DNA from: Macrostomum lignano
Taxonomy: Eukaryota
Assembly: GCA_002269645.1 (NCBI GenBank)
Contig: NIVC01002942.1
Location: forward strand, 1-64,000
Length of the DNA stretch: 64,000 bases
Direction of reading: 5' to 3'
The notes under the pieces were generated by a model, which was not told where the DNA came from, did not search any database, and saw only the letters and a program-made list of their open reading frames with translations. Positions 1 to 32,797 of the stretch are shown here, in pieces; position 1 is the stretch's first letter, and every line of letters begins with the position of its first letter. The position numbers and the translations under genes are program-made.

Positions 1-1820
1 CCACAGTTAGTAATTTTATTGATGCATTGTTCAAGACACCACTTACTTCTTGACTGATAACCAACCTCTTTTATTAATTTGTGCTAGGGCTGGTTGTGGC
101 CTGTCTATTCTTATTGGTAAATTCAAAACATCAGGACTCAGTGGTGCTGCATAATCAGACCCTAGAGTTCTAAGAAGTAGGTTGTCCTCAACTCCCTTGC
201 CATTTCCACCAGCGCCATCAAACATTATAAAGTTTTCAACATTCTTACCCATTAGAGCTGTGGCTATAACGGATTCCCAACTTTTTCTATTTTCTGGATC
301 GGGATGAATTTGGTTATGCAGATTAACAATGAAGCCATAGTCGTAATCACTCACTCCAAGTACATCCGAGTAATTATATCCCACCGATTTAGTAACGTAA
401 TCGTCATATCTATACTCGCGAAACTCACCTGTAAGGAGGTCGTATACTCCATCGTTAAACCCTAGCAAATTCCATTTCATGTCGAATTCAATTTCATTGT
501 TAGTAAACCTCTCTTTGAACAAAGTAGTTACCTGTTTGAGTTTGTTGGCTCCTTGTATTGAATTTATATTCTTTATTGTACTCTGTAGTTTCTTTTCAAG
601 TGCTTTTAACTTCTCTTTATCATCAGCCGCCTTCTTAATTGCAATTTCGAGTCTAGTCTTTCGGTGGTTTAACTCACTGCTGACAAGTGTGATATTTTAA
701 GAAATATGTCATTTATACTACTTAGTTCTCTCCACTTATCATCATCAAAATAGTAAATACCATCGCTATTGTAAATTATATTATTCTTCTTATATTCATA
801 AACAAAGTTGGTTATATTAACGTCAGTGAAATTATCATCAAGAACTCAATCCTACCATAATAATCATATTTGCTTTTCCATTCCTTATATTTTTATAGTT
901 TTCTTCACTTGCCCATTTCTTAGTACCGATAGTAAGTCTGTCCTGTGCATCAGCAGAGCTGGTACTGGTGCTATTCCACACCTTTTTACATGATTCGGAA
1001 TCGAACTTATCATAATTTACTTTTGACCAATCAGTGAATACTTTGTACATTTCATCACCACTGTCTATGTCGCGGAGTATAAGTGCTACCTTGTACCAAG
1101 AATCATAGTCTTGGTTTTTGTGTTGTATTATACTTAACAACTTTGAAGCTCCTTCACAAGTGGGTGTGGAACGGTGCTTTTTAGTGCCTGTTTATCGGGT
1201 TCTTGTTTTCTTTTTTATCCTGTGGCTTTATTAATCTATTTATCTCATCAAGAATTACATCTCGCATGTCTATTAAACATTTGGACTTTGTACGTTTGTA
1301 TTCCTAATTTCACCATCGACATAATAGAAACCTGGTGGAGCAAATACTAAGGCGGGAATATCAAAACCCACACTTTGTTGAATCGTTACTTTCAATCCAT
1401 CTACTTTGTTAAAGTAAAAGTGGTGTCCCTTGTTTGTCTGAACAACCCAATCACAATGAGTCATACACAGTTCATTCAACTCAGGGCATAGGTCAGCATT
1501 ATCAATATCGATTACGGTTATATTTGAGTTTCTAGTATCTATCCAAATCATGTTGTCTACATCTGGTCGAAATGGTGGTGAGGTTGAATTCCTATCTGCT
1601 TTGTTGGCATTCCTGATGGTATTTTTTTCTTTGTTTTACTATTCCATGTTACACTGCAACTTCCGAATCTAAAATTAAGTTCTTCATAGAGATTAATTAG
1701 TTTATCGTACGATTTTGTTTGTTTTAAATTTGTCAATCTTGGTGGTGGGACATCATGTTTTGAAGCGGATCCTGTACGATCACAGGAGAGAAACTTGAAT
1801 CGTTTTGATTTTTTCTTTCC
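1..1820 (-). pseudogene. Prim-pol + PriCT-2 + D5-like SF3 helicase, broken by several frameshifts; runs off the left edge
   Basis: 1273-1551: TVIDID...QTNKGHHFYF (AEP prim-pol motifs). 838-1140: YDSWYKVALIL...FTDWS...W (PriCT-2). 43-522: LLGFNDGVYDL...DYVTKSVGYNY (D5-N) and Walker A GAGGNGKG. Confidence 0.85.
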
Positions 1821-2654
1821 ATTTTATTTAAAATAAATTTAACAATATAATTCATCAGTTTCAATGTACTTCTCAAGGGTTATGGGGAGTTTGAAAATGT
1901 TCAACTTAAGCATGACGAAAAATTCATCATTCCTTATGTGCTGTCTCGAAATCAATGCCCATTTATCAACATGTGCAAGATATACTCTGAATGAATACAA
2001 ATATGGGGGCATTTACAATCGCTGTGTTTTAATATTTCTGCTTTATATTCATCGTAAGCTTTATCAATTTCTTCAATTAGTCGAGCCTTTCGAGTGGTGT
2101 TTTTATTTGAGAGAAATTTATAATAGAATCATAATACTTTTGTGGCAGTGCATTTCGTACATTTGGGTTAGCTTCCATTTTTCTATGAAAAATTTAACAT
2201 TTTTGCTTTCTTTTGGGCAAATTTCTATAGATAATCCAACTTTAGCATTTTCTGTGTATCATTATACTTTGTCTTCTTAAATTTTCGCTACTTTTGCGCC
2301 TACTTCATTGGCAGCTTTTTTATTATTGACTGCCTTTGCGATTCCGGCAGCACCTGCCTGTCTTATGAGAGGTAGATTGTCTTTTAGTAAGTTGGAATGG
2401 TGCTTCTAGTATCAAAATACCTTCTCCATTGTACTCTAGGGCTCACCTATTGTATACTCTCTTAGCTTGCGTGGATCTGTAACGGGGCACATTTTTGTCT
2501 ATTTTTAGAAACAGAAAAATAAACACAGGAACAGAAAGACTTTCAGACACCAAAGGCCAAACTCCATTGGGCTAAATGTGGCCTGCTCAAAGCGATGATA
2601 TATTTGTTTAAATTATTACCTTAATAAATGTTTGATATCAAGTCATGTTGATAA

Positions 2655-2924
2655 TTATGGCGCATTAGATGGTTCTATATCAGCGCGGCATGTTGGGCAC
2701 CTAACCATGTTGCCCTCTTGAATTCCGGTGCGATAACATATTTCACAAACCACAGCTCGACAACATGCCATGGTAACGTTTGGTGGCCGTGGTTCGTGTT
2801 GGCAGATTGGACAAAGCCCTTGATTATTCCCCGGCTGAGCTGGATGGTTCTGTACTTGAGTCGGGTTATCCTCTGGTTGAATATCAGCTAGTTGGTGCTC
2901 CATATCTTGGCGATAAGCAACCAA
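2655..2924 (-). CDS. RING-finger protein (putative E3 ligase); may join the 3040-3231 ORF through frameshifts
   Basis: CPIC-x9-CC-x4-CxxC-x11-CPTCR RING-like pattern. Confidence 0.7.
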   Translation of the reverse strand: MVAYRQDMEHQLADIQPEDNPTQVQNHPAQPGNNQGLCPICQHEPRPPNVTMACCRAVVCEICYRTGIQEGNMVRCPTCRADIEPSNAP

Positions 2925-3338
2925 GCGCCTCTCTGCTTCTTGAACGCGACGTTTTTGAAGATAGTAGTTCTAGGAAAGGGTTTGGTGCGCTCGTATATGA
3001 TTTTTGTAAACTTAAAACCTTATAATGTAAAAACACTTTTTAACTAACCTTTAGCTGATTAAAGAAGCGCTCTTCATTAGCCAAATTTTGTGGGTTATAC
3101 TCCAAAAAGATGTTGATGGCAATATCTCTAAACATTGAGTTCCTATGGTGTTGTCGCAAATTTCGCTCACGAATTCTAAGAGTTGCTCTAGCGGCAGTAA
3201 GCCTCTCGTGCAAATTCGAGAAAGAAGGCATTGTAGGAATGATATTTGTAAGAAGGTAAAGTTAGTAGAGAAAAATTACTAGACCTTGCCGCTCGTGGCC
3301 ATTCATTTATATATTTTTATGACAAAACGTCAGACCCC

Positions 3339-3439
3339 GCATTCCATTCAGACCAAAACACGAGACCAATTTTTATCTTTTTATTTTTCGAAATTTTCTT
3401 CTCGCGTTTTGGTCTCGCGTTTTGGTCTGAATGGAATGC
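3339..3439. repeat. 31-bp inverted repeat with a 39-nt AT-rich spacer
   Basis: GCATTCCATTCAGACCAAAACACGAGACCAA (3339-3369) pairs with TTGGTCTCGCGTTTTGGTCTGAATGGAATGC (3409-3439), 1 mismatch. Confidence 0.9.
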
Positions 3440-3444
3440 ATGAC

Positions 3445-3930
3445 TCAGTGTAGCAAGAGTATAAGATAAAAAATATAAAACCCCGAATTCCTGTGTTAGT
3501 CATCGAGTGAAGTTTGCCTACTTGCTTTGCTATCTTGGTCGGACAATAGCCGACCATATTGTTGCGGTGCGAGCTTGCTTCTGTGTAGCAAGAGTAGATG
3601 AAAAATATAAAACCCCGAATTCCTGTGTTAGTCATCGAGTGAAGTTTGCCTACTTGCTTTACTATCTTGGTCGGACAATAGCCGACCATATTGTTGCGGT
3701 GCGAGCTTGCTTCTGTGTAGCAAGAGTATAAGATAAAAAATATACAACCCCGAATTCCTGCGTTACTCATTGAGTAAAGTTTGCCTACTTGCTTTGCTAC
3801 GGTGGTTGGACAATAGCCGACCATATTATTGCTCTGCGAGATTGCTTCTGTGTGTAGCAAAAGTAGATGAAAAATATACAACCCCGAATTCCTGCGTTAG
3901 TCACTGAGTGAAGTTTGCCTACTTGCCAGC
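3445..3930. repeat. Tandem repeat of 132-135 bp, about 3.5 copies, inside the element
   Basis: CCCCGAATTCC recurs at 3481, 3613, 3748 and 3882; units carry the hairpin GGTCGG-N7-CCGACC. Confidence 0.9.
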
Positions 3931-4021
3931 TTCCTAAGATAGTAATTTTTTGTTTATTGACCCCGTTGGGAGTTTTTGTACTTATGTTGTGTTTTTATGG
4001 TGACTATGGTATTATGTCTAA

Positions 4022-5399
4022 TTATGTGACAATTATGTCTAAAATCGGATAAAGTTGAAAGCCTGAAACAATAAGAACAGTTGATCCTTCAGTGGCTGAA
4101 TTAATATGCACTCTATAACCGGAGAATTTTTCGGTGGAAGCTACTTCAAAATATTTCATCACTCCAGGAACTAAACCAGCATTTTCGGTAGAAAAAATAT
4201 TCCTAAAGTCTCTCTTGTTATTGCTCCCTTTCAGAATAAAACTTTTTGGTTGATTTTTTATAATTTCACTACCTACTGCTTTGGTTCCTTTCAATCCGAA
4301 TTTCCAAATTTGAATAGATTCAGGAAGTTGTACTTCAATGTAAGAATTGGGTTCATTCCTCGATGCCCATTCTGAATTAGATACTATATAACCCCAATTA
4401 TCTGACGTTTCAAATGCTCCTGATGACGCTACATTGAAACCCCTTTCTCTATAGTTTTGACGTGTTGCTAGTGAGGGAATATATCCTGTATAAGATTTGA
4501 AACCTAGTCCCCGCCTTAGTCGCAGCTCCACTGATTCAAGTGCATTGTCTACGTATAGCTTTGGTACAGCTTGAAGTCTATCTATAGGCCACACTAAATC
4601 ATTAACCACTGTTTGTCTCTCAAGTAATTCAACTTTTGTAAGCTTTACGGAACCAGAAAAATTAAGAGAATAATGGAAATAATATGAGGGTTTGGGTATT
4701 TTTTTCCTAAGATGTGCATTGCCCCTTCGTAGTTCAATGGGTGCACTTTGTTCAACAGGTGTCCAGTTTGTTCCATTTAGGCTCACACTAACAGACCAAC
4801 CAGGCCACACCTCTCCTTCCAACTTTATCTCTACAACTTTCCTAGCTCTTTTCAAAATTGAAATCGTATCCACTTGTCTGAGTCATCTGCACTGCTCCAT
4901 TCTGAAGCGGGTTTGAATCTGCAACATGATATGCTGCTGAAGAGTTATGAGAAGCGGTCACTTTCATGTCAGGATGGGAAGCGTTTGAAGTCAGTAATGA
5001 AAGAATATTGACTAATTTCGAACTCTCTGTACCTCCCGCAGTACCTTGCCTTTCTGCTAACAAAGTGTCAATCTCAGTTTTAGAATACATCTTAGTGTCA
5101 ATTTCGGTTTTAGAATACATCTTAGTGTCAGTTTCGGTTTTTGTGTAGACATTGTTTACGCGCCCATGAGCATCGTCAATTAATTGTAGCATGGTGATAT
5201 TCATTGCGTCACTATCTTCCTTTGAATAAGAGTCTGAAACATTTCTCTTTGCTAACAATAAATTATCTATTTCCTCTCTCTTATATCCTTCATTTTCATT
5301 GATGTATCGATCATCAGCTAACGCTATTGTTATTCCAGGTGCTATATCATTTGAATTTGACGAGTAACCAAATTGATTAGCAGTATTCTTGTAACTCAT
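4022..5399 (-). CDS. Fibre-like / receptor-binding protein with YSKTEID repeats and F5/8C (discoidin)-like domains; frameshifted near 4860-4920
   Basis: YTKTETDTKM/YSKTEIDTKM/YSKTEIDTLL stalk repeats. C-terminal SEWAS...YIEVQLP...IWKFGLKG...PKSFILKGSNN...YRVHI. A second discoidin start (SEWSSADDSDKWIRFQF) is present in another frame. Confidence 0.6.
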
Positions 5400-5827
5400 T
5401 TTAATTGCTGCAAAATTTCATTATAGCTATCTCCTTTATCGATTCGATGTAAAAAGTACAGCGACATTTGACCACAAAATTTCTTATCTAAAGTTTGAAT
5501 TTGTTCTTCCATGTCTCCACATATTCTATTCTTTGTGTGATTAAACTTTTCCATAATTTCCAGTGTGGGCGGTAGTGCATAGGAATCAAAAAAATAAACC
5601 TTATCATGAGCTGAAAAGATAGCTGAATGATGTATACCCCGTTCTTTCGAAGTGTGAATATTTGTCATAAAGTAACCATACTGTGGTAAATCAACAATTT
5701 CATCTCTCATGGCATAGCGAAATGGTTTTAACTTGAGATATTTTGCCCAATTTATCAGATCAATATTAGTCGTAGTGTCAGTCCCAAACTTTTGTTTAAA
5801 TGCATTCCATGTCTCAGCTTCGCTCAT
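5396..5827 (-). CDS. Adenain-like (Ulp1-fold) cysteine maturation protease
   Basis: GIHHSAI...YFFDSYALPP...QIQ...FCGQMSLYFL (His, Asp, Gln, Cys); ATG at 5827 in TAAAAATG context. Confidence 0.88.
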   Translation of the reverse strand: MSEAETWNAFKQKFGTDTTTNIDLINWAKYLKLKPFRYAMRDEIVDLPQYGYFMTNIHTSKERGIHHSAIFSAHDKVYFFDSYALPPTLEIMEKFNHTKNRICGDMEEQIQTLDKKFCGQMSLYFLHRIDKGDSYNEILQQLK

Positions 5828-5836
5828 TTTTAACAC

Positions 5837-6627
5837 TCATATTTGTCGTACGTGTAGATTTATAAATATTTCCTCGCCATCAAAGTCGTATAGAACACCA
5901 GACTCATCTTCGATGACAAAGTCGAATGTGCTCAACATGTTTGTAGTTAGTGGTAGGTACACAGGATTTGCAGGCTCTTGAATAATTTTACTTCCCATTG
6001 GGACAGAGAACGATGGAATTGAAAGAAGTATTTGCTTATCAATTAAATGATTTCCATTGGCTGGATCAGTGATAAAACCCCCTTTGATATTGAGACAACG
6101 AACCATGATCGCACTTCTAGCTCCGTCTATCCGAGCTGGATTTGGAGCTCTCTCAAATGGTTTCAAATACACTTCCGAATTGAATCCCAACAGTCTTCTA
6201 AAGTTATTGGAATGTGCATCCCTGAAATCAACTTGATACTCTGTGGCTAACCGTAACTCAACCCTACGCGTGTCTAGGCTTGCACTGAAAACAATAGCCC
6301 CTCTTTCCAATCATTTGCAGCTGTTAGCAATCTTTGAATCTCGCTTGACAGACTTTTAACTTCCCAAGATCCTGCTTGAATCTTTATTTTCTTCCATGTT
6401 CTACCACTATCCCTCGAGTATCGCAACTCATTATTGCCTCCTTCAATATTGTTAATAGCATCAAAGACTGCAAACTTTTTTATACCAGCTTCGTATTCTC
6501 GATCTTCATACAAATTTATCGGAGTGCCTAGAGTTTGTCGAAATGGGTTTTTAATTGAAAAGAAGTCAAATGTGCGTTGAAACTTTTTACTCAAGAGGAT
6601 GTTGACTTTTTCTATTTCTTTTTCCAT
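5837..6627 (-). CDS. Minor capsid protein (penton), one frameshift near 6290-6300
   Basis: Joining the 6274-6627 and 5837-6310 ORFs gives INNI..GNNELRY...IKIQAGSWEV...YQVDF...RLLGF...EPANPVYLP...FDGE, typical of Polinton pentons; lies next to the protease and ATPase. Confidence 0.8.
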
Positions 6628-6629
6628 TT

Positions 6630-7359
6630 TTAAGCAAGTAATTCTACTAGCTCTTTATCAACATTGTTATGTCCCTCTGCTTTTGCGGCTAGTAATGTCA
6701 ACACTCTTTCACTGAGTCCAGATCCCGGTTTTACTCGATATCCTGGTGGATTATCTTTCAATATCCTTACTGCTTGCTTATAATTCCCACTTGATTTGGC
6801 CGCTGGATTTTTACAGTGTTCAATGAGGTTAACATAATCCTGCAATGTTTGCATCTTGAATTGCTTCAGCTCTTCACCATTTTCAGTTACTTTAGGCATT
6901 TTGAACAACTCTTCAAGATCTTCAGAAAATGGCATTCGGAATTCGTTGACAATGATGTCCGACCTTGTTCATGGAATTCAACCTCTATTACAGATGATCC
7001 AAATATATATCCAGCATCAGTTTTTTGAATCCGTATACTAGGCGCTGGTCTTTGAGTTATTGGAATCTTTCCAATTTCTTCAATTATTTTGTCAAATACT
7101 TCCAGAGGTTCAAATCGTCCTTTTGGTGTACTTAATTGCGGAACTGGAACTTTTTGATTCTGAAGTTTATCAACAAGGTTGGCATTGAATCAATAAATTC
7201 ATCAAGCTTTTCTGTGACAGGTTTTTGAGCTAATGGAGCCACTCTTGCATATAAACTCTCTTCTCCAATTTTCAAATAGCGTTGAGCATCATTTCTGGAT
7301 TTGTACGTTTCTCGCTGCTTTGCTAAATTAATGAGTTCTCTTATATATTCATTAGTCAT
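6630..7359 (-). CDS. Conserved Polinton hypothetical protein, probably one ORF split by frameshifts
   Basis: Contiguous coding segments in shifting frames between ATPase and penton; FSEDLEELF...YVNLI...KPGSGL segment. Confidence 0.45.
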
Positions 7360-7361
7360 TT

Positions 7362-8135
7362 TTACAATGGGATTTTAGTTAGAACATCCTTATACAAATC
7401 TTGCTCATCCTCATCAGCTCTTGTATTTATATAGATATAGCCATACTTCTTTTTCCAAGCCTCTCTACATTTAGCCTTGAATATAGCGGGTTCATAATTC
7501 GTTTCTATATTTCTAGCAATGTGATTTAAGTTTGTATCTTTTTGTTTAAAGATTATGTAACATGTCGTATTCTCCCTGACAGTATTGCGATCTAGTTTGG
7601 TAAAATTTTGAGCTAGATAAAAACCACAACAGTTTCCATGCCTGCCTCTCTGAAACAGACTTTCCTGAAATGTTTGATTAGCCTCTCCCAAAACATCGTC
7701 CAATATCACACATGTCTTTAGTCCATTATGAAAAATTTCTTCATTTGGAGTATGGGAAAGAGTGACAGGAATTTTCTCTATTACTTCTGAATTTTCTGAT
7801 GTGCTTTGCACTCGACCAGGGTTGGCTGCCTCTCGACAAATATGTCTAATATCTTCAGGAGATGCATCCTCACTCACCTGGTAGACATGATAGAGTGAGT
7901 TGATAAGAGAAGGTGGGAGACCATTTTCAAAGCCATATTTTAGAAACTGATACTCTGGATCCATTTGAGATGCTCTGGGAACATATAAAACTAACTCATT
8001 AAAGTCAACTAGTTTTTCAGGACTTGTAAGAATATGGAATAGTAAATATGTTTTACCCGTATTTGTAGCGCCGATAATACAACATAAAAGAGGATTAGGG
8101 AAAATAGGATCATGCTGAAATTTTACTTTGGGCAT
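7362..8135 (-). CDS. A32/FtsK-like DNA packaging ATPase
   Basis: Walker A GATNTGKT, Walker B CVILDD, arginine finger RGRH, YLAQ motif; intact 257 aa. Confidence 0.93.
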   Translation of the reverse strand: MPKVKFQHDPIFPNPLLCCIIGATNTGKTYLLFHILTSPEKLVDFNELVLYVPRASQMDPEYQFLKYGFENGLPPSLINSLYHVYQVSEDASPEDIRHICREAANPGRVQSTSENSEVIEKIPVTLSHTPNEEIFHNGLKTCVILDDVLGEANQTFQESLFQRGRHGNCCGFYLAQNFTKLDRNTVRENTTCYIIFKQKDTNLNHIARNIETNYEPAIFKAKCREAWKKKYGYIYINTRADEDEQDLYKDVLTKIPL

Positions 8136-8156
8136 TTAAAAAAAGAAAAAATGACC

Positions 8157-9521
8157 TTATTCGACGCGGGTCATTTGATATTCACTGGTAACTTTTATTA
8201 CATTCTTTGTTTGTTCAAGAATTAGTGCAAAAGCAGTCAGCTCAACATTTGTTGACTTCTTGATAAATAATTGAATATTCACTCCACTCTTGACCAGAAA
8301 CTCATCTTGAGCTGTTAGATCAAAGCAAAAGATTGGATAGATGGTTAGAAAGTCTTGTTTATTGAATGGAGGAGTTACACCGAAACGGCTGCAGATGTCT
8401 TCGTACATTTCATACGCTCTGTGAATGTCTTGAGCTACTGGATCAATTTCAACATAATCATTCGGATACATCACCTGATTTAATCTGACTTGAAGCTGGG
8501 TTATTTTCACTGCATTTGCTCCAGTTTTGTAAGACACATACTTGTGATCATTAACTATATATGATGGGTTGTTTACGTCATATTTGAAAGCTACAAAGAT
8601 TGCAAGTGGCATATTGGAGATGTTGGCTATGTTCCATGTATATGGACTTCCTTGAATGAGTTGTGGTGGAACCGTTACCCTCTCTGGAAATGATACTGTA
8701 ATGTCCTTGTTGAGTGATTTTAGAAAAGCTGCTTCAGCACTGGGTGACAAAGTAATAGCAGGGATCCAAATCTCAAAGCTATTAATAGTTAACTTAGCTT
8801 CCGTCCCGGCAGCTCCAAAGAAAATTTCAGCATCGTTAGTCTTTCTTGTCCATGTGAATTTATATTTAATTCCTTTGCTAATCTTCTGCCAATCAAGGAA
8901 CCCAATGAGAGGTGTTAATGATAGTTTGATTGTTCCACCTCTGTTTGGAGCATTAGTGACATTGTTATAATTTTCAAGCCTCCTAATGTATCCAGTATTC
9001 GAATCCTTCTTATTGAGTCTATTTTTCATAGCGATTGCTGCAGTTCTCACAGCTTCAGCATCTGCGTTGTTTGCTAGAGGTATATCAGAAACAGTCCCAG
9101 CATCTCCAGTGTCTGGAATCCATCCGTATGCTTCTCCAACTTCATTCATTAATTTTGAGTACATTACGGACTTTAAGATTGTGTCATACTCTCCAGGATC
9201 ATTATAGACTTTCTTTGTTCCTCCAATGTCAACTATGAGTTGAGAGAAAAGTCTCATAGGCCAATTATGTTCTAGAGTAATGTTCGTATTCAAGTCGGTG
9301 TTATCTCGTTGTGTTATTGAGTATTTTATACAACCGAATGCCTCTGACATGAGAATGTATGACTCTGTTGAATTGACTTCATGAACTATTTGACCTCCTG
9401 CAACATTGAGATTATTAGTGCTACCTGGAGTTGGAGAAATCTTAATATAGTCTTCTTTCTTTTTGAAAAAGCTAAAAGTTTTGTCCTCATATATGCTCAG
9501 TATATCCTTTTTGTTCTCCAT
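8157..9521 (-). CDS. Major capsid protein (Polinton/adintovirus hexon-like)
   Basis: Intact 454 aa; TNNLNVAGGQI...ITLEHNWPMRLFSQL...PGEYDTIL and C-terminal YPIFCFDLT; position in the morphogenesis block. Confidence 0.85.
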   Translation of the reverse strand: MENKKDILSIYEDKTFSFFKKKEDYIKISPTPGSTNNLNVAGGQIVHEVNSTESYILMSEAFGCIKYSITQRDNTDLNTNITLEHNWPMRLFSQLIVDIGGTKKVYNDPGEYDTILKSVMYSKLMNEVGEAYGWIPDTGDAGTVSDIPLANNADAEAVRTAAIAMKNRLNKKDSNTGYIRRLENYNNVTNAPNRGGTIKLSLTPLIGFLDWQKISKGIKYKFTWTRKTNDAEIFFGAAGTEAKLTINSFEIWIPAITLSPSAEAAFLKSLNKDITVSFPERVTVPPQLIQGSPYTWNIANISNMPLAIFVAFKYDVNNPSYIVNDHKYVSYKTGANAVKITQLQVRLNQVMYPNDYVEIDPVAQDIHRAYEMYEDICSRFGVTPPFNKQDFLTIYPIFCFDLTAQDEFLVKSGVNIQLFIKKSTNVELTAFALILEQTKNVIKVTSEYQMTRVE

Positions 9522-9541
9522 TTTTATAAGAGAAATTTCAA

Positions 9542-9994
9542 CTAAGCTTCATGAGGTCTAAGAATTATCCCATTACCCTGTTTCTCCTTTTCAACTTTAA
9601 ACGTCTTTAGCAGCCACTTGACTGCTTCGCTGGGTACTTGTTCGACTCTTTTAGCCGCATCAACTAATACTCCACTCCCTTGAGCCTTTTTCAACTCTTC
9701 TAGTTTTTGCCGTTCAATGCTTTCTATTGTCTTATTATGTTTAGCATTGTTGGCTGTATTAACACTTTTTGCAATCATTGTACCAACTCCTGAGGCTGCT
9801 CCGATACCACCCAAAATTGCTGGTAGTAAGCCTAATAGAGGAATTATTCCACCTTCATGTTCTTTCTGTTTCTCTTGCAATTCTCGAATCTTCTCTTTAG
9901 AAAGATATTGCTTTTGCTTATTTACAGTAACATATCTTGGTTTTCCCTCTCGAACATATCGATTGAGTCTTGCTTCAGTGTTTTTCTCGCTCAT
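9542..9994 (-). CDS. Small basic virion core/membrane-active protein
   Basis: EGGIIPLLGLLPAILGGIGAASGVGTMIAKSV amphipathic segment followed by a coiled coil and QGSG/QGNG motifs, as in Polinton small structural ORFs. Confidence 0.6.
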   Translation of the reverse strand: MSEKNTEARLNRYVREGKPRYVTVNKQKQYLSKEKIRELQEKQKEHEGGIIPLLGLLPAILGGIGAASGVGTMIAKSVNTANNAKHNKTIESIERQKLEELKKAQGSGVLVDAAKRVEQVPSEAVKWLLKTFKVEKEKQGNGIILRPHEA

Positions 9995-10002
9995 TTTTAA
10001 GG

Positions 10003-10425
10003 TCAGAATTTCTTCAAACCATTGCCTTGTCTCAAAGACACTTGAGACTGTTCTGCTGTTCCTAGAGCCTTTTTAACAATATCTTGAATAGCCTTATTTG
10101 ATTGAGAAGCTATCTGTTGCTCTTCTTCCATTCTTTTCTTTGCTTCTTTATCTCTACGTTTCTTTTTAATATATTCCAGTTCCTCACCTGCTTTAGACAT
10201 GTCACTGTATGATTTCTTCGCATCGAATATGTTCTTCGCTGTGGTAGCTGTTTTACCTATTGCATCAGCTCCACTCACAATTTTACTTCCATGATTTGAT
10301 AAAAAGTTTGTGACACCACTGATCATATCACCAATTCCTTCACCCTCTTTATCAGCTAGTAGTTGTGAATCAGACGTTTCAATCTGACCTTTCGCCCGTT
10401 TGCAGTTTGTTCGATAGGCGCTCAT
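10003..10425 (-). CDS. Small virion core protein
   Basis: EGEGIGDMISG..., lysine-rich C-half, terminal QGNGLKKF; ATG at 10425 in TAAAAATG context. Confidence 0.55.
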   Translation of the reverse strand: MSAYRTNCKRAKGQIETSDSQLLADKEGEGIGDMISGVTNFLSNHGSKIVSGADAIGKTATTAKNIFDAKKSYSDMSKAGEELEYIKKKRRDKEAKKRMEEEQQIASQSNKAIQDIVKKALGTAEQSQVSLRQGNGLKKF

Positions 10426-12616
10426 TTTTAGTTGAAAAATTTGCTGGTAGAAGCTGGGATTTGTAAAATGATCCAATGATTTCTTCTCCATTCTCATCCT
10501 CAATAATGTAGGTTATGGGATTGGAGTAAACTATTTTCTTTATCCTAAACACTTCTGAAATTTTCCAATATCCTCTTCGACCCTTTTCAAAGTGCTCCTT
10601 ATATCTATAGATATGAACTTTGTCACCTACTTTGAAGTTTGGTTTCTCATTTGAATACTCGAAAGTTGGCTTTGGTACTCGCTCAGGATGTTTAGATGCT
10701 TCTGAAGGAGTTATCAGAATCTCAGAATGGATTGTGTTGTTGTATTTTTCAACAATAGCTGGCAATGTGTGGAGCCACTTCTGATTACCCTGTAGATCAA
10801 ATTCAAACCAGAGTTTATTTGTGAGAGTACGATTGAACCTCTCAATCATTGCATTCTTGGACTCGCCATAAATTGAAAACATCTTGTTAATATATTCACC
10901 CTTTCATCCTTCTTTCTAATGTTGTCTTTTGAAAACGAGTATAGCTTGTACATATGCTGATTATAAAACTCCTTGCCTTCATCTACACAAAGTCTCTCTG
11001 ATCGTCTTCCTGATTCCTTAAATACTTTTTGGAAAGCTTCTGCAACTTCCGCTCCCGTCTTTGTTTTCAAAGGAACTGCCCAGGCGTAACGTGTAAAACC
11101 ATCTATGATAGTTAGAGCATATTTGTAACCTCTTTCGGGCGGTAGGATAATGATATCTGCATGCCAAATTGTGTCTTTTGCATAGTGAATCATTTTTCTA
11201 AATACTCTTGGCTTTCGATATTCTTTATGCAATTTTACTGCATCTTCATAGCTAAGACCCTTACCATAAATTGTTAGACAGTCAATACAATTGTTGGGGT
11301 TGTGAGTATGAATGCCTAATCCAAACCGAACTTTAGCCTTGATAATACGCTTTACTAGATTTCGAATGAGTCTCTCTTTCACAGACAAGTCACTGGTTGG
11401 AATAGCATCTAAATCAGCTATCATTTTTTCATCAGCTATATGCTTCTTTGCTAGAGCTTCCTCTGGATTTGAAGAAGTGTTTTCAGCATCTCTATAGTTT
11501 TTGTCATGATAGTAAGCAGTCCAATCGATTGGGTTAATTGGTAGACTGTCATACCGAGGCCGGTCTGTAATTGGATTGAGTCTCTTGTCTAAATTTGTAC
11601 CCGGCAGTTGTTCCTCAATCTTTCGAAAGAGGCTGGACTTTATCTTAAGGCTTCATCAGGATTGACCAGATCCTTCAGCCCCACCCCCATTAAGTCTCTG
11701 AACCTTCTCCATATCCTTGTCAACTTCGTTCGGACTTAGGAGCTTGGCTGCGGATTTCCACCATGTCCTCAAGCTTGTTACCATCGAACCATAGGTTCGC
11801 GGACGAAGTCCGATTGGGAACAGGAATTACCTGTGTTCCTTCAGAAGATTTCTCAACTGAAGTGGTACTTGAGGCTGTTATTGACGTACTAGAATCGGAC
11901 GGAGTTCCCGCAATTTGAAGGTGTCGCCAATCACTAAGCACTTGTTTAATGTTGGTTATAATGTTTTTGTATTGATCACCATAAAGAAATTTCAATGCAA
12001 ATTCTCCTGTTATAAGGGTGATTCCATTGTCTAGTAAAATATTCTTAGGTTCCTTTGTAGTTCTATTGATGCATACATAATACAACTGATAGGTGGGATA
12101 AGAATTTTTATAGTCTAATAGTTTCTGATAATTCCTTTCACGACTTGATGAATTGTCCGTGTTATCAGAAGATTTAAGCTCTAATGCAATCTTTCGCTCA
12201 ACGTGAACCAGGTCTATCTTTTTTACCTTCTCGAATCCAAAATAATTTTCTGCTAATATTTCATATAGTCTGCCTAGTCTCATTTGAATAACTTTAATCT
12301 TGTGTGAAATTATTAACTCTTCTTGGAAAAGATCATGAAGAATTTGATCATGCCCAACCTTATCATCAATTGGTTTCAGAAGAATTTCTCGAATTGTTTG
12401 CTCCATTTTTACTATAGAAACTTTAACAAGTGCTTATTTGATGACTAGCAAGGACATTGACTTCCTCACTCAGGCCACTACGTAACCTGCAAAAGAATAC
12501 CCTGGAATATGAAGTTCTCCTGGGTATTTTCCAGTGGCGAAGATGGGTGGTAGTTTTGTTATAGCTGACTGAATATCTAAAGCATTTCCTAGAAATAATG
12601 GTTTACTGAAGGCCAT
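10379..12616 (-). CDS. Parvovirus-type PLA2 domain fused to a retroviral-like (rve) integrase; exon 1 12616-12485, exon 2 from 11604; one frameshift near 10860-10880
   Basis: Exon 1 is 44 codons ending ELHIPGYSFAG. Exon 2 continues PGTNLDKRL...NPIDWTAYYHDKNY (PLA2 motifs) in frame with the 10846-11424 ORF. The DDE triad is WHAD / LCVDEGKEF / IERFNRTL, and the C-terminus is YIIED..GEEIIGSFY. Confidence 0.9.
11605..12484 (-). ncRNA. Group I self-splicing intron (IC1-like core), 880 nt
   Basis: 5' exon ends in U, which pairs with G of the IGS (CAGGU/GCCUG, 12471-12475); the intron ends in omega-G. P AAAUUGCGGGAA (11905-11916), Q AAUCCGCAGC (11747-11756), R GUUCAGAGACUU (11692-11703), S AAGAUAAAGUCC (11635-11646). 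P3 CACCUUC/GGGGGUG, P7 GACUU/AAGUC, P5a A-rich bulge GGUAACAAGCU, and a P9 hairpin. Removal restores the conserved FAGPGT. Confidence 0.95.
11720..12406 (-). CDS. Intron-encoded PD-(D/E)xK endonuclease, Eco47II-restriction-enzyme-like (putative homing endonuclease)
   Basis: Intact 228-aa ORF starting between P1 and P3. QMRLGRLYE...KIDLV...IALELKSSDNTDNSSSR..YQKL resembles the Eco47II-family Q..IG...D...E.K...NT.NS.S pattern (recognised from memory, no search run). The last ~70 codons overlap the ribozyme core. Confidence 0.72.
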   Translation of the reverse strand: MEQTIREILLKPIDDKVGHDQILHDLFQEELIISHKIKVIQMRLGRLYEILAENYFGFEKVKKIDLVHVERKIALELKSSDNTDNSSSRERNYQKLLDYKNSYPTYQLYYVCINRTTKEPKNILLDNGITLITGEFALKFLYGDQYKNIITNIKQVLSDWRHLQIAGTPSDSSTSITASSTTSVEKSSEGTQVIPVPNRTSSANLWFDGNKLEDMVEIRSQAPKSERS

Positions 12617-13030
12617 TTTATATATATAAAATTTACTATCGTTGAATTGGATGACACTTTCATATTGTATATACCTGAAATTGCATTAAATTGACCCGTG
12701 AATCCAACTTTTCTCATGGTTTTAGAGCTGGAATCGTGAAAATTGCACTTTTTAAAAAAATTAGAAAATCACAAAAAATCGCTGTTTTCAGACCATTTTC
12801 ACCTGTTTTTAGTCATTTTTCACTTATTTTTAGTGATTTTCAAAATGAGTGAGGGCATGAGGGCGAGGGCACCCCCCCTTTTTAAAAGTATAAAAATTCC
12901 GGAAAATCTGTGTTCGGTGAAATATTCCACAGGCCAATGCCCCCCACATGCCCTCACCCTCAACACCCTCACTCACAGATATATGTATATTTACATATCA
13001 CACACCCACTTGAATCCATGACCTCCTGGT

Positions 13031-13130
13031 AGTAGTAGTATGTTATAAGGGGCTGAGTCATCCAGCGAGCTGGCGCGCAATGCGCCCGAGCAATTAAGTG
13101 TGGCGCAGCCCCTTATAACATACTACTACT
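13031..13130. repeat. 100-bp unit bounded by perfect 25-bp inverted repeats; probable element terminus
   Basis: AGTAGTAGTATGTTATAAGGGGCTG (13031-13055) and its exact reverse complement (13106-13130); flanks CCTGGT and CCCATT are not a TSD. Confidence 0.8.
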
Positions 13131-13322
13131 CCCATTCCCAATACCCCATCGCTAATACCCCTTGTCTCAGCCCGCAGCCGGCTCCGGTTTGTGCCCCTTT
13201 TCAGTTCTCTCTCTTTCCTTTCTCCTTCTCTCCCATCTCTCCCATATCTCCCATATCTCCCATCATACATTGCCCAAGTCAATCTCGACCGCTATCCAAT
13301 TCAACCCGAACTCCCTTTCCAG

Positions 13323-16300
13323 CCTCTCTGTCTACGTGGTGGATCTGATGCAGTTCATCCTGCTGACCTTCGAGAACCACCTCACGATCGTGTTCGGCTG
13401 CATCCTGACGGTGTGGAGCCTGCTCACCACCGAGGCCTGGAAGCGGTATGAGAGCAGCCTGAGCTACCGCTGGGACGTGAATCACCACTACATCGCAGAG
13501 AACCGCCGGCCCGCCTACGTGCTGAGGAAGAGCCGCTGCCAGCCCGTGAGTGGATCTGCGGCAGTGCTCAGCTAATCCCCACAGCAGCTTGTAATCTCAT
13601 TTTCATCCGGCTTTGCAGATATGGTGCACCCAGCAGACCACCAGGCGGAAGTGCATCGGGTTCTACTCCTGCGTGCTGTCCTGCGTGAGCGGCTTGGGCT
13701 GGCTGCTGACTGGCTGCATCACATCGCATCACATCACATCACATCACATCACATCACATCACATCACATCACATCACATCACATCACATCACATCACATC
13801 ACATCACATCGCATCACATCACATCACATCACATCACATCACATCACATCACATCACATCACATCACATCACATCACATCACATCGCATCACATCACATC
13901 ACATTATGTCAAATGACACTAGAACACATCACATCACATCACATCAAATTACATTAGAATACATCACATCAAACCACATTATATAAAGGAAATTAGAATA
14001 CATCGCATCATATCACATCACATCACATTACGTCACAACACATATCACATCAAATGACATTAGAACACATCACTAAACTTCATGTCACATAACATCACAC
14101 CAAATCACATTAAACGATATCAGAACACATCCCACCACACCATAGCACATCACATCAAACCCTATATCGCCAGAGCACAACCGCTTTCTCAACCCACCGC
14201 CAGGTGATTCTGGTGTTTGCCATCACGGTGGGTTTCCAGGTGGCCCGGCTGGTCGGTGACAGGTCCTACTGCACAGCCGAAACCTCCGCCTTCTCCTGCT
14301 TCATTGTCAGCACCGTGCTGCCCATCACCGGCCAGGTCATCGTGATCTCCATTCTGGACTCGGTCAGTCCGGGCTGGGGATGGCGGGACAGAAAAGACCG
14401 AATGAAATTCTCATCTCACAGCAGGCGGATCACTTTGTGCACGCGCCTGACTCTCGCGCCACGAGCCCCGGTTCCATTTGGGGCTGGTGCGCACTAAAAT
14501 TGGCCCAGGGGAATGCCGCACGATTTACACCCGAGCCTCCCAAATCACAGAGAGTGTACATGCCTGACGATTAGAAAGCCAGGGCCACTGTACACCCTGT
14601 TGTGAGCGTGCGCATGAGTGCTTGTCTGCGCACGCCCTAACCAGTATCCACAGAGCAGTACATTACAATACATAAAAGTACATTACAGTGCATTAAAAAA
14701 ATATTACAGTACACTACAGTGCATTACAGTACATTAGACTACATTACAGTACATTATCAGTACATTATATTACACTGCAGTACATTACAGTACATTATCA
14801 GTACATTACAGTACAATACGCTCGTACAGTACATTAAAAACATTACAGTACACTACAGTGCATTACAGTACATTATCACTACATTACAGTACATTATCAC
14901 TACATTACAGTACATTATCACTACATTACAGTACATTATCACTACATTACAGTACACTACAGTGCATTACAGTACATTATCACTACATTACAGTACATTA
15001 TCACTACATTACAGTACATTATCACTACATTACAGTACACTACAGTACATTACAGTACATTACAGTGCATTACAGTACATTACAGTACATTAGAGTGCAT
15101 TGCAGTACATTAGAATACATTACAGTACACTAGAGTACATTATAGTACATTAGATGCAGTGCAGTACATTACAGTACATTATCAGTACATTACAGTACAT
15201 TACAGTACATTAGAGTGCATTGCAGTACATTAGAATACATTACAGTACACTAGAGTACATTACAGTACATTAGAATACATTACAGTACACTAGAGTACAT
15301 TACAGTACATTAGAGTACATTACAGTACATTAGAGTACATTACAGTACATTAGAGTACATTACAGTACATTAGAGTACATTACAGTACATTAGGGTACAT
15401 TACAGTACATTACAGTACAGCACCCGCGCGCTTGTATGTGCTCAGAAGTCAGCAGAATGAGCAGTTACTCCCTCAGCACTGGTTGTGCGGGACAATGTCG
15501 CCGATGCGTTGCGCCAGGGAGCCCGCAGCCCTCATAAGCGAGCATTTGTGTTTATTTTGATCAAAGAGTGAATCGCCTTTTACCTTGCAGCTGTACAGCG
15601 TGCTGGCCAAAGCGGTGACCAACTGGGGTGAGCAGTTTGTCAATTTTTTATCAGGGACGAGTTCGGTTCCAAGGAGGGAATAATACGCTAAGGAGACAGG
15701 AACTTTCCGTTTCTTCGGCGCAAAAGTATCCTGCCGTTAAATATGAATTTCTTCCATATATTATGAATATGAGTTTAGTTTTAAAAAGCAAAAGCGAATA
15801 AACAATCTTTGAACTTTTGCAGAGTGTCACGAGTATCCGACAGACTACGACAACTCATTCGCCATCAAGGCCTTCGCCTTCCGCTTTGCCAACAACTATG
15901 CTCCACTGTTCTATATCGCCTTCGTGCGGCAGGTGAGGCCGGCTGCCGTAATGCCCTCCAGTGCCCACCTTCCAGTGCCCTCCCTCCAGTGCCCTCCCTC
16001 CAGTGCCCTCCCTCCAGTGCCCTCCCTCCAGTGCCCACCTTCCAGTGCCCTCCCTCCAGTGCCCTCCCTCCAGTGCCCTCCCTCCAGTGCCCTCCCTCCA
16101 GTGCCCTCCCTCCAGTGCCCTCCCTCCAGTGCCCTCCCTCCAGTGCCCACCCTCCAGTGCCCTCCTTCCAGTGCCCTCCCTCCAGTGCCCTCCCTCCAGT
16201 GCTCACCCTCCAGTGCCCACCTTCCAGTGCCCTCCCTCCAGTGCCCTCCCTCCAGTGCCCTCCCTCCAGTGCCCACCTTCTAGTGCCCTCCCTCCAGTGC

Positions 16301-19492: not shown

Positions 19493-19912
19493 GCCGGGAG
19501 CCGGAAAAGCCGCGGAAATTCCATGGAAATACCGTCATCATGTACTGAAAAGACGGTCTGATATGAAATTAGAACCAGTGCCTTTGTTGAACAGAAACGG
19601 CAACAAATCGCATGCACTATTGGCTATTTTACGCGACAAACTTTCAGTTAAAAACGCCTTGCTCAATCCAGTTATTAGTAGACTATACTAGGGTACTTTG
19701 AAACCGCTTCCTGCAAGTGTAATACCAGTTCTCTTCCTGCGTTTTGCACCCTGCTCAAAAATTATAAATACTTTGCGATGCTGACTACAGATTATTTTTT
19801 TATTTCTGACAATAAAGCGGCTCTTTTACACAGCTTTGCTAAACATCAATTCGCTTGGGATTAGAGCTGACTCGTGTTTTACCGGGAATAGGGACACGGT
19901 CTGTGAGGTCTG

Positions 19913-20812
19913 GATCACAGTCTGACACACAGTCTGACTCACAGTCTGACTCACAGTCCGACTCACAGTATGGCTCACAGTCTGACTCACAGTCTGACTC
20001 ACAGTCTGACTTACAGTCTGACTCACAGTCTGGCTCACAGTCTGACTCACAGTCTGGCTCACAGTCTGACTCACAGTCTGACTCACTGACTCACAGTCTG
20101 ACTCACAGTCTGACTCACAGTCTGACTCACAGTCTGGCTCACAGTCTGACTCACAGTCTGACTCACAGTCTGACTCACAGTCTGGCTCACAGTATGACTC
20201 ACAGTCTGACTCACTGACTCACAGTCTGACTCACAGTCTGACTCACAGTCTGACTCACAGTCTGGCTCACAGTCTGACTCACAGTCTGGCTCACAGTCTG
20301 ACTCACAGTCTGACTCACTGACTCACAGTCTGACTCACAGTCTGACTCACTGACTCACAGTCTGACTCACAGTCTGACTCACAGTCTGACTCACAGTCTG
20401 ACTCACAGTCTGACTCACAGTCTGACTCACAGTCTGGCTCACAGTCTGACTCACAGTATGGCTTACAGTCTGACTCACAGTCTGACTCACAGTCTGACTT
20501 ACTGACTCACAGTATGACTCACAGTCTGACTCACAGTCTTGGCTCACAGTCTGGCTCACAGTCTGGCTCACAGTCTGGCTCACAGTCTGGCTCACAGTCT
20601 GGCTCACAGTCTGACTCACAGTCTGACTCACAGTCTGACTCACAGTCTGACTCACAGTCTGACTCACAGTCTGACTCACAGTCTGACTCACAGTCTGACT
20701 CACAGTCTGACTCACAGTCTGGCTCACAGTCTGACTCACAGTCTGGCTCACAGTCTGACTCACAGTATGGCTTACAGTCTGACTCACAGTCTGATTCACA
20801 GTCTGACTCACG
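19913..20812. repeat. 12-bp CAGTCTGACTCA tandem array
   Basis: Direct reading. Confidence 0.95.

Positions 20813-25623: not shown

Positions 25624-32797
<7,174 letters not shown>

Follow-up and report, generated by a model that had tools for sequence, protein, structure and literature searches.

A group I intron with a candidate Eco47II-like nuclease gene in a virus-like element integrated in the flatworm Macrostomum lignano

The integrated element and its phospholipase A2-integrase gene

The analysed stretch of DNA, referred to as the window, comprises positions 1 to 64,000 of contig NIVC01002942.1 from the Macrostomum lignano assembly GCA_002269645.1. Its left part is occupied by an integrated virus-like element that encodes a capsid protein, a packaging ATPase, an integrase, and a D5-type primase-helicase. 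In this element, a phospholipase A2 (PLA2)-integrase gene is interrupted by an insert of exactly 880 nt. The following features were identified, all of them on the minus strand except for the last one, for which no strand is assigned:

1..13130 (-), the part of the virus-like element that lies in the window, with a GC content of 36-39%; similarity to the other copies ends on the right at 13130
1..1876 (-), D5-type primase-helicase, running off the left end of the window and broken by several frameshifts and stop codons in this copy
7362..8135 (-), A32-like packaging ATPase, intact
8157..9521 (-), double-jelly-roll major capsid protein, intact
10379..12616 (-), PLA2-integrase gene as a whole (exon 1, intron, exon 2), broken by one frameshift in the integrase part in this copy
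12485..12616 (-), exon 1 of this gene, 44 codons ending in HIPGYSFAG, last base U
11605..12484 (-), group I intron, 880 nt
12471..12489 (-), P1, formed by exon CAGGU (12489..12485) and the internal guide GCCUG (12475..12471), with U.G at the 5' splice site
12447..12470 (-), P2 hairpin, 8 bp
11720..12406 (-), intron ORF of 228 aa, a PD-(D/E)XK nuclease of the Eco47II family according to profile and predicted fold, and a candidate homing endonuclease; residues 167-228 read through the ribozyme core
11613..11923 (-), ribozyme core P3-P9, with P3 at 11923-11916 / 11689-11682, P4 at 11912-11907 / 11754-11749, P5 at 11902-11898 / 11762-11758, P5a/b/c at 11874-11767, P6/6a/6b at 11748-11702, P7 at 11696-11692 / 11640-11636, P8 at 11680-11649, and P9 at 11632-11613
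11785..11812 (-), two perfect small hairpins inserted in the P5 extension and present only in the flatworm copies
11605..11605 (-), terminal G of the intron (omega-G)
1..13507, zone without GGNCC; all 108 GGNCC sites of the window lie at or beyond 13508

The element genes were assigned by Pfam profile searches, which identified the capsid protein (DJR-like_dom, 1.9e-13), the ATPase (Pox_A32, 6.9e-6), the integrase (rve, 2.7e-10), and the primase-helicase (D5_N and Prim-Pol). In a further copy of the element, L001, the primase-helicase is represented by ORFs of 574 and 248 aa with PriCT_2 and D5_N. The PLA2 domain (PF08398, Phospholip_A2_4) is supported by the calcium loop YSFAG|PGT, which is followed by the catalytic motif YYHDKNY. 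Exon 2 alone scores below the cutoff for this family (5e-4), but uninterrupted homologues carry the Pfam annotation.

The original prediction had assigned the element to the Polintons/Mavericks. Double-jelly-roll capsid, A32-type ATPase and rve integrase are in agreement with this class, and a PLA2 domain has also been noted for adintoviruses (PMC8502044). However, the replication gene in the window is the D5-type primase-helicase, and no protein-primed family B DNA polymerase, which defines Polintons/Mavericks, lies in the window. An ORF next to the element in L001 has a motif reminiscent of family B polymerases but gave no match in Pfam or PDB. Thus, polinton-like virus is the safer name. 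The PLA2 domain is fused to the integrase rather than to a pX-like virion protein. Orthopolintovirales-like insertions have been mentioned for rhabditophoran flatworms (bioRxiv 10.1101/2025.04.19.649669).

The identical capsid protein is encoded on two contigs of the M. lignano assembly. A homology search with a flanking anoctamin exon in a word-indexed protein database found nothing, whereas an exhaustive search showed that the exon is 97-98% identical to M. lignano UniProt entries, which probably derive from a different, earlier assembly. The exon has M. lignano paralogues on contigs of 129-272 kb, and most other named hits are animal. The element occurs with two different flanks, one of which is present as a pair 99.6% identical over 21 kb, as expected for this neopolyploid genome. 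Contamination of the assembly, for example with DNA from a protist or from the diatom food, is therefore very unlikely, although all close relatives of the element are environmental and one oomycete anoctamin appears among the distant hits.

A group I intron between the Gly and Pro codons

The presence of a group I intron at this position, as proposed in the original prediction, is confirmed. A gathering-threshold scan of the whole window with Rfam gave a single hit, RF00028 (Intron_gpI), at 11997..11614 on the minus strand with 88.9 bits against a gathering score of 50 (E 2.2e-21), covering the full model 1-253. The insert separates the codons FAG|PGT, and exon 2 starts at 11604 with CCG GGT ACA (PGTNLDKRL). 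Removal of the 880 nt joins TTTGCAGGT to CCGGGTACA and exactly restores a conserved reading frame that exists uninterrupted in relatives. An environmental homologue, P0003 on contig L005, is 70% identical, matches the N-terminus encoded by exon 1 and has HIPGYSFAGPGTNLDKRL without interruption. The P/Q/R/S blocks are present (AAUUGCGGGAA, AAUCCGCAGCC, GUUCAGAGACUUAA, AAGAUAAAGUCC), and P7 is GACUU/AAGUC where relatives have GACUA/UAGUC.

Six environmental polinton-like contigs (L003, L004, L018, L098, L099, and L100) carry a related intron at the same GGT|CC position, with Rfam scores of 65 bits for L003 and 59 bits for L004. In all seven introns, exon 1 ends in U, P1 and P2 are predicted to form, and the terminal G immediately precedes the CCN Pro codon. 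The arms of P2 differ but remain complementary, and the guide changes to GCCUAA where the exon reads UUAGGU (L004, L098, L099). In the core, 91.3% of pair cells are paired, compared to 36-46% when partners are slid, and 25 pairs have changes on both sides, compared to at most 7 in the slid controls; none of 500 shuffles reached the observed values. These double changes include P7, which is GACUA/UAGUC, GACUU/AAGUC or GAGCA/UGCUC. RNAalifold independently recovered P5abc, P6, P7, and P8 with 21 covarying pairs. In contrast, the thermodynamic stability of the core alone is only modestly better than that of shuffled sequences (z = -2.0) and was not used as an argument. P10 is weak in the window copy, with 3 bp at best, and three relatives (L098, L099, L100) lack P9. 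An ordinary insertion, such as a transposon fragment or a spliceosomal intron with a chance resemblance to a ribozyme, is refuted by the Rfam score and the covariation; moreover, there are no GT...AG ends and the position is conserved in genes only 42% identical.

The assignment to subgroup IC1 in the original prediction is not established. The conserved P4/P6/P7 core blocks of the Rfam consensus and a three-helix P5 extension, with P5a, P5b, and P5c supported by covariation, are present. P2.1 and P9.1/9.2 were not found without subgroup-specific models; the ORF occupies the region between P2 and P3, and the intron ends 8 nt after P9.

Group I introns of family RF00028 have already been reported in 2025 for polinton-like viruses of protists, namely in Rhodomonas lacustris cluster C3, Paulinella micropora, and Desmodesmus armatus (PMC12220804). 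In R. lacustris, the intron also lies in a gene whose first part encodes about 50 aa, close to the capsid gene. However, those introns are 309-376 bp long and no endonuclease was recognised in them, whereas the intron described here carries a nuclease gene, lies in a PLA2-integrase gene, and belongs to an element in an animal genome. The ribozyme core is also found in giant viruses. At least 120 viral contigs share an exact 23-nt core match, and 20 of those loci gave 18 RF00028 hits. The interrupted genes include RPB1 and the NCLDV capsid gene, with insertions at highly conserved protein motifs, and these introns are 70-77% identical to the core in the window. None of the 122 matches carries the Eco47II-like ORF or a PLA2 exon. 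These relationships bear out the link to protist-associated viruses made in the original prediction, and the intron probably entered this virus group in the aquatic protist virosphere.

The transcript presumably splices itself by the usual two guanosine-dependent transesterifications. Whether this also applies to worm cells is unknown, and it is possible that the intron is an inert passenger of a recently endogenised, decaying element. In the window copy, the PLA2-integrase gene has one frameshift, so that its match to the intact homologue P0001 falls into 2 segments in 2 frames and splicing would not yield a full-length integrase. The penton-like gene has a probable frameshift and the primase-helicase has several breaks. 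Each of the three copies has its own set of breaks, and the nuclease ORF is truncated in the copy L002. On the other hand, the copies are 99.5-99.9% identical, the nuclease ORF is intact in two of three copies, and the ribozyme scores higher in Rfam than its environmental relatives. The breaks differ between copies, and some of them could be errors of the PacBio assembly.

The intron-encoded nuclease and its inferred target GGNCC

The original prediction did not include the intron-encoded Eco47II-like nuclease and the GGNCC logic, which is the more interesting part. The product of the intron ORF scores above the curated cutoff of the Eco47II restriction endonuclease family (PF09553; 29.5 bits against 25.9, E 7e-7), and five of 15 homologues carry the same precomputed annotation. 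The residues D65, E76, and K78 are conserved in 16 homologues. An AlphaFold model has a pLDDT above 90 for residues 1-166, and the top hit of this model in a Foldseek comparison is EcoO109I with a probability of 1.0. A profile search of the ORF family against PDB sequences gave only noise (E 0.2 or worse), and the link to restriction enzymes therefore rests on Pfam and on fold comparison. Eco47II homologues are assigned to GGNCC (PMC10305163). Bacterial Eco47II, Sau96I, and EcoO109I (GGNCC, RGGNCCY) are paired with a cytosine methyltransferase, whereas no methyltransferase domain was found among the 15 element ORFs scanned. Relatives of the ORF with about 30% identity occur in giant-virus bins. 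No group I hit was found in these 10 loci, suggesting that these relatives are free-standing, and a motif scan revealed no C5-methyltransferase motifs there.

Interestingly, GGNCC is the pentamer that any Gly-Pro codon pair (GGN CCN) must spell, and all seven introns are inserted exactly in the centre of such a site. The part of the element in the window has 0 GGNCC in 13,130 nt against 15.9 +/- 3.6 expected, which is the strongest depletion among 32 palindromic patterns, while CCNGG occurs 18 times against 16.3 expected. Six intron-bearing loci together have 0 against about 28 expected, and L004 has 0 in its 12.7-kb gene block. Intron-less L005 has exactly one GGNCC, located at the Gly-Pro codons. 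The intron-less contig L102 comes from the same sample as L004, is 97.6% identical to it over about 9 kb, and has GGNCC within its gene block only at those codons. In contig L101, the nuclease gene is free-standing next to a PLA2 gene that reads GVGNP, which has no site.

Based on these data, a mobile group I intron in the calcium-loop motif (YxGPG) of a PLA2-integrase gene is the favoured explanation, with a probability of roughly 0.75. The encoded nuclease most likely recognises GGNCC and would cut intron-less alleles there, so that repair copies the intron in. The intron splits the site and would thereby protect its own allele, while the carrier genomes seem to escape by having lost every other GGNCC. 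Splicing, cleavage, GGNCC specificity, and homing are all inferred from sequence. In particular, a 5-bp site is far shorter than the 14-40 bp targets typical of homing endonucleases, and the enzyme may read a longer site. Alternatively, GGNCC is not the target, or not the whole target, and its absence reflects pressure from some other GGNCC-cutting enzyme met by this virus lineage, for instance one encoded by co-infecting giant viruses, so that the fit with the Gly-Pro codons would be coincidence. This is suggested by intron-less L102, which also avoids the site, and by the giant-virus bins with relatives of the ORF, which are themselves GGNCC-poor (16 against 62 expected). It is nevertheless unlikely given the insertion point, the GGNCC remaining in L005 and in the gene block of L102, and the fact that both the enzyme family and the best fold match cut GGNCC-type sites.

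An intron-encoded nuclease with PD-(D/E)XK fold is known from a cyanobacterial tRNA group I intron, I-Ssp6803I (PMC3384342). This bacterial enzyme belongs to a different sequence family and has a long target, whereas the ORF described here passes the threshold of a named type II restriction enzyme family and appears to keep a 5-bp palindromic specificity.

Implications for mobile introns and restriction enzymes

Group I introns have apparently not been described in animal nuclear genomes, and none is reported in the papers searched; here, one is located in nuclear DNA of a flatworm. A far-reaching but doubtful possibility is that the element is, or very recently was, a replicating virus associated with a flatworm, whose ribozyme would still splice in animal cells. 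Its nuclease would act as a methylase-free restriction enzyme that drives homing into the one site a PLA2 gene cannot easily lose and also cuts competing DNA, with the carrier being immune because it has purged every GGNCC. This would represent a direct evolutionary bridge between type II restriction enzymes and homing endonucleases, found in a eukaryotic virus inside an animal genome.

The insertion point, the remaining sites in empty alleles, and the total site avoidance in carriers point to a 5-bp target that coincides with a dipeptide codon pair. This gives a concrete case for the long-discussed kinship of restriction and homing enzymes and shows how a selfish intron can anchor itself in an invariant protein motif. 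Finally, it links the mobile-intron pool of giant viruses, polinton-like viruses, and an animal genome.

A group I intron at a Gly-Pro junction

The interrupted gene and its insert lie on the minus strand and consist of the following parts:
12616, minus strand: start of the ORF reading MAFSKPLFLGNALDIQSAITKLPPIFATGKYPGELHIPGYSFAG, which then runs four more codons into a stop
12484..11605, minus strand: 880-nt insert flanked by ...GCAGGT and CCGGGT..., in agreement with the original prediction
12406..11720, minus strand: ORF of 228 aa within the insert
11604, minus strand: start of a second reading frame with PGTNLDKRLNPITDRPRYDSLPINPIDWTAYYHDKNY..., which continues into an rve integrase domain (Pfam rve 2.7e-10; Phospholip_A2_4 5e-4)

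A gathering-threshold Rfam scan of all 64 kb returned a single hit, Intron_gpI, at 11997..11614 on the minus strand with 88.9 bits (gathering score 50; E 2.2e-21), which matches model positions 1-253. The exon boundaries are fixed independently, as a protein database search with the N-terminal part of exon 2 as it stands returned P0003, a protein from an ENA metagenome with 70% identity that reads ...GKYPGELHIPGYSFAGPGTNLDKRLNP... without interruption. Removal of exactly 880 nt therefore restores a conserved frame consisting of 44 codons followed by Pro.

Other hits start artificially at '...PGT' because the gene caller began inside an intron. In the respective environmental contigs L003, L004, L018, L098, L099, and L100, a related intron of 799-852 nt was found at the same Gly|Pro junction, which is always GGT|CC. 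The longer contigs (L003, L004, L098, and L099) have the same gene neighbourhood with integrase, small ORFs and, where the contig reaches that far, a double-jelly-roll capsid or ATPase gene. Rfam scores are 65.3 bits for L003 and 59.4 bits for L004. The host genes are as little as 42% identical in protein, so that the position is conserved across deep divergence. Interestingly, contig L102 from the same sample as L004 is an intron-less counterpart of the latter, with 97.6% identity over about 9.1 kb downstream of the insertion point.

The seven cores were aligned and the helices were derived from the Rfam alignment of the window copy. In this alignment, 91.3% of pair cells form standard pairs, in contrast to 36-46% when the 3' partners are slid by 1-3 columns, and 25 of 65 pairs show a change on both sides, in contrast to at most 7 in the slid controls. 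None of 500 column shuffles reaches any observed measure. P7 is GACUA/UAGUC in five introns, GACUU/AAGUC in the window, and GAGCA/UGCUC in L003. P5a has a different complementary arm pair in almost every intron, for example CCUCAAG/CUUGAGG in the window and CUUCUUC/GAAGAAG in L003, and P6a, P6b, P5c, and P8 covary as well, while the invariant P4 is not informative. RNAalifold, which was run without prior knowledge of these helices, recovered P5a/b/c, P6, P7, and P8 with 21 covarying pairs. In contrast, the folding energy of the core is only 2 sd better than that of shuffles, and P10 has at best 3 bp in the window copy. The introns of L098, L099, and L100 end 9-11 nt after the 3' strand of P7 and have no P9 hairpin. 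At the 5' end, all seven introns fold into P1 followed directly by P2, and the guide reads GCCUG where the exon ends with CAGGU, and GCCUAA where it ends with UUAGGU. All exons end in U and all introns end in G. The flatworm copies have an extra 28 nt forming two perfect hairpins in the P5 extension. The original prediction had noted a close resemblance to the Tetrahymena IC1 core; a P5abc-like domain is indeed present but P2.1 and P9.1/9.2 were not found, and the subgroup is left unassigned.

The intron-encoded nuclease and its presumed target site

The intron ORF lies between P2 and P3 and is placed by Pfam in the family RE_Eco47II (PF09553) with 29.5 bits against a cutoff of 25.9. Fifteen homologs with 47-61% identity were found by BLASTP, which share the conserved residues D65, E76, and K78 and a TDNSSS block. 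The AlphaFold model is confident for residues 1-166 and disordered for residues 167-228, the stretch that reads through P3-P6 of the ribozyme and is conserved only as RNA. The best fold matches of this model in the PDB are the type II restriction endonuclease EcoO109I, free and on DNA (probability 1.0, E 8e-5), followed by other PD-(D/E)XK nucleases. Eco47II has been classed as PD-(D/E)XK (PMC3424549) and Eco47II homologs are assigned the site GGNCC (PMC10305163), while the site of EcoO109I is presumably RGGNCCY. The sequence just upstream of the intron ORF (12407-12430, minus strand; tttctatagtaaaaATGGAG) resembles that upstream of the capsid gene (9522-9545, minus strand; tttctcttataaaaATGGAG), and several other genes share taaaaATG. 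The intron ORF may use the expression signals of the element.

A Gly codon followed by a Pro codon (GGN CCN) always spells GGNCC. In all seven cases the intron sits in the center of this site, so that insertion destroys it. The element (window 1-13130, GC 37%) has no GGNCC, whereas 15.9 +/- 3.6 are expected from dinucleotide-preserving shuffles. GGNCC is the most depleted of 32 palindromic 4- and 5-mers, while its mirror CCNGG is found 18 times against 16.3 expected and GGCC 13 times against 16.6. All 108 GGNCC sites of the window lie at or beyond 13508. The other two flatworm copies have 0 in 15 kb each, while their flanks have 14 and 15. L003, L098, L099, L100, and L018 also have 0; together with the window about 28 are expected. 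L004 has 0 in its 12.7-kb gene block and 7 in the 8.5 kb upstream of it.

Intron-less contigs were compared accordingly. L005, which encodes P0003, has exactly one GGNCC, which is GGGCC at the Gly-Pro codons of FAGPGT, and L102 has GGGCCC at those codons and no other GGNCC in the 11 kb that follow. More distant intron-less relatives are less depleted or not depleted, with 2 sites against 3.1 expected in L006 and 18 against 27 in L007. In contig L101, an Eco47II-like ORF (393-920) is free-standing and lies directly upstream of an uninterrupted PLA2-integrase gene (910-1698) whose motif reads GVGNP, which has no GGNCC. Several other homologs also replace the Pro, with the motifs GTG, GAQ, and GIG.

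These distributions suggest that the enzyme keeps a GGNCC-type specificity and that the Gly-Pro codons of the PLA2 calcium loop are the one site these genomes find hard to lose, which the intron occupies and splits. Carriers would then protect the rest of their DNA by site loss rather than by methylation, as no methyltransferase domain was found among the element ORFs scanned. However, it cannot be excluded that avoidance is imposed by a similar enzyme from elsewhere, because the intron-less relative also avoids the site. Loci in giant-virus bins (L008-L017) that encode relatives of the nuclease with about 30% identity are GGNCC-poor as well (16 against 62 expected; CCNGG 68 against 62), and a motif scan found no C5-methyltransferase motifs within 3 kb.

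The carrier element and its host

The following features are found in the element and its flank:
1-13130: part of the window shared with the other copies
2655-2924, minus strand: small RING-finger ORF (Pfam zf-C3HC4_3, 5e-5), identical in all three copies
3381-3926: tandem copies of a unit of about 135 nt (about 90% identical) that give a repetitive ORF
8157-9521, minus strand: double-jelly-roll capsid protein
10379-12616, minus strand: PLA2-integrase gene
13031-13057 and 13104-13130: 27-nt perfect inverted repeat pair about 46 nt apart
13350-18842 and 27900-29200, plus strand: exons of two tandem anoctamin paralogs
13700-13950, 14720-15130, 15800-16800, 17980-18340, 19860-20820, and 26760-27400: long micro- and minisatellite arrays in the host flank that give spurious repetitive ORFs

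The capsid protein is encoded identically on two contigs of the Macrostomum lignano assembly GCA_002269645.1. These contigs match window 1-13130 with 99.5-99.9% identity and then diverge. The inverted repeat pair forms a palindrome of roughly 100 nt exactly at this right end and could be a terminal hairpin of the element or a small foldback element. The two contigs are 99.6% identical to each other over 21 kb including the flanks and look like homeologues or alleles of one insertion, while the window is a second insertion. The flank of the window contains anoctamin exons (Pfam 6e-20), and the element lies immediately upstream of the first visible exon, possibly inside an intron of that gene. 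One exon is 97-98% identical to M. lignano anoctamins in UniProt, 51% identical to M. lignano paralogs on contigs of 129-272 kb, and 41-43% identical to the named animal anoctamins looked up. The host is therefore an animal.

All visible genes of the element are on the minus strand. These encode a D5-type primase-helicase, which runs off the left end, a protein with a discoidin-like domain, a small protein matching a conserved ORF of L102, a penton-like protein, an A32-type ATPase, the double-jelly-roll capsid protein, two small ORFs, and the PLA2-integrase. In the latter, as in the homologs P0003, P0008, P0018, and P0030, the PLA2 domain is fused to the N-terminus of the rve integrase, whereas in adintoviruses it is described as fused to a pX-like virion protein (PMC8502044). 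No protein-primed polymerase is seen, so that the designation polinton-like virus fits better than Polinton/Maverick (the name used in the original prediction) in the strict sense. In L001, one of the other flatworm copies, ORFs containing KLLNNSFYGK, which is reminiscent of family B polymerase motif B, lie just beyond the helicase gene on the opposite strand to the element's genes (20379-21338). This region is also GGNCC-free and low in GC, but the ORFs had no Pfam or PDB match, so that it is unclear whether the element also carries a polymerase.

In the window copy, the PLA2-integrase gene has one frameshift, the penton-like gene has one probable frameshift, and the primase-helicase gene has several frameshifts and stop codons, while capsid, ATPase, the two small ORFs, and the intron ORF are intact. 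The other copies have different breaks; for example, the penton-like gene matches in a single frame without stops in both of them, and the intron ORF is truncated in L002, the remaining copy. Some of these breaks may be errors of the long-read assembly.

Relatives of ribozyme and nuclease among viruses

Group I introns in polinton-like viruses were reported in 2025 from Rfam hits in protist genomes; these were 309-376 bp with no recognized endonuclease (PMC12220804). Group I introns in giant-virus RNA polymerase genes (PMC10675990) and PLA2 domains in polintons and adintoviruses (PMC8502044) are known, and polinton-related insertions in rhabditophoran flatworms are mentioned in a 2025-26 preprint. 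In contrast, no report of a group I intron in an animal nuclear genome, of an Eco47II-family enzyme in an intron, or of the Gly-Pro/GGNCC relationship was found among the open-access papers and preprints searched.

A 23-nt core motif extending from the P4 3' strand to P6a has exact matches in at least 120 IMG/VR contigs, and 117 of 122 matches have the R block downstream. Twenty of these loci gave 18 RF00028 hits of 51-107 bits. The interrupted genes include those for RNA polymerase Rpb1 and the NCLDV major capsid protein, and the giant-virus contigs L122, L125, and L109 have two group I introns of this core type in one gene region (Rpb1 or capsid). These introns are 70-77% identical to the core of the window, while the PLA2-site introns are 77-82% identical. 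None has the Eco47II-like ORF, and the relatives of that ORF with about 30% identity occur in giant-virus bins without a detectable intron.

The original prediction of a group I intron in an animal-integrated viral gene is thus confirmed, and its interpretation as pointing to passage through, or exchange with, protist-associated viruses is supported, apart from the two corrections of name concerning the element and the intron subgroup. Although its splicing and homing are only inferred and its role in the worm is unknown, this is a group I intron of the giant-virus lineage, probably mobile, that carries a restriction-enzyme-family nuclease, in a virus-like element that has entered an animal genome. 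Ribozyme and nuclease both have kin in the giant-virus gene pool but are combined only in the PLA2-site intron. L101, with its free-standing nuclease gene beside its presumed target gene, may represent a stage before that combination.
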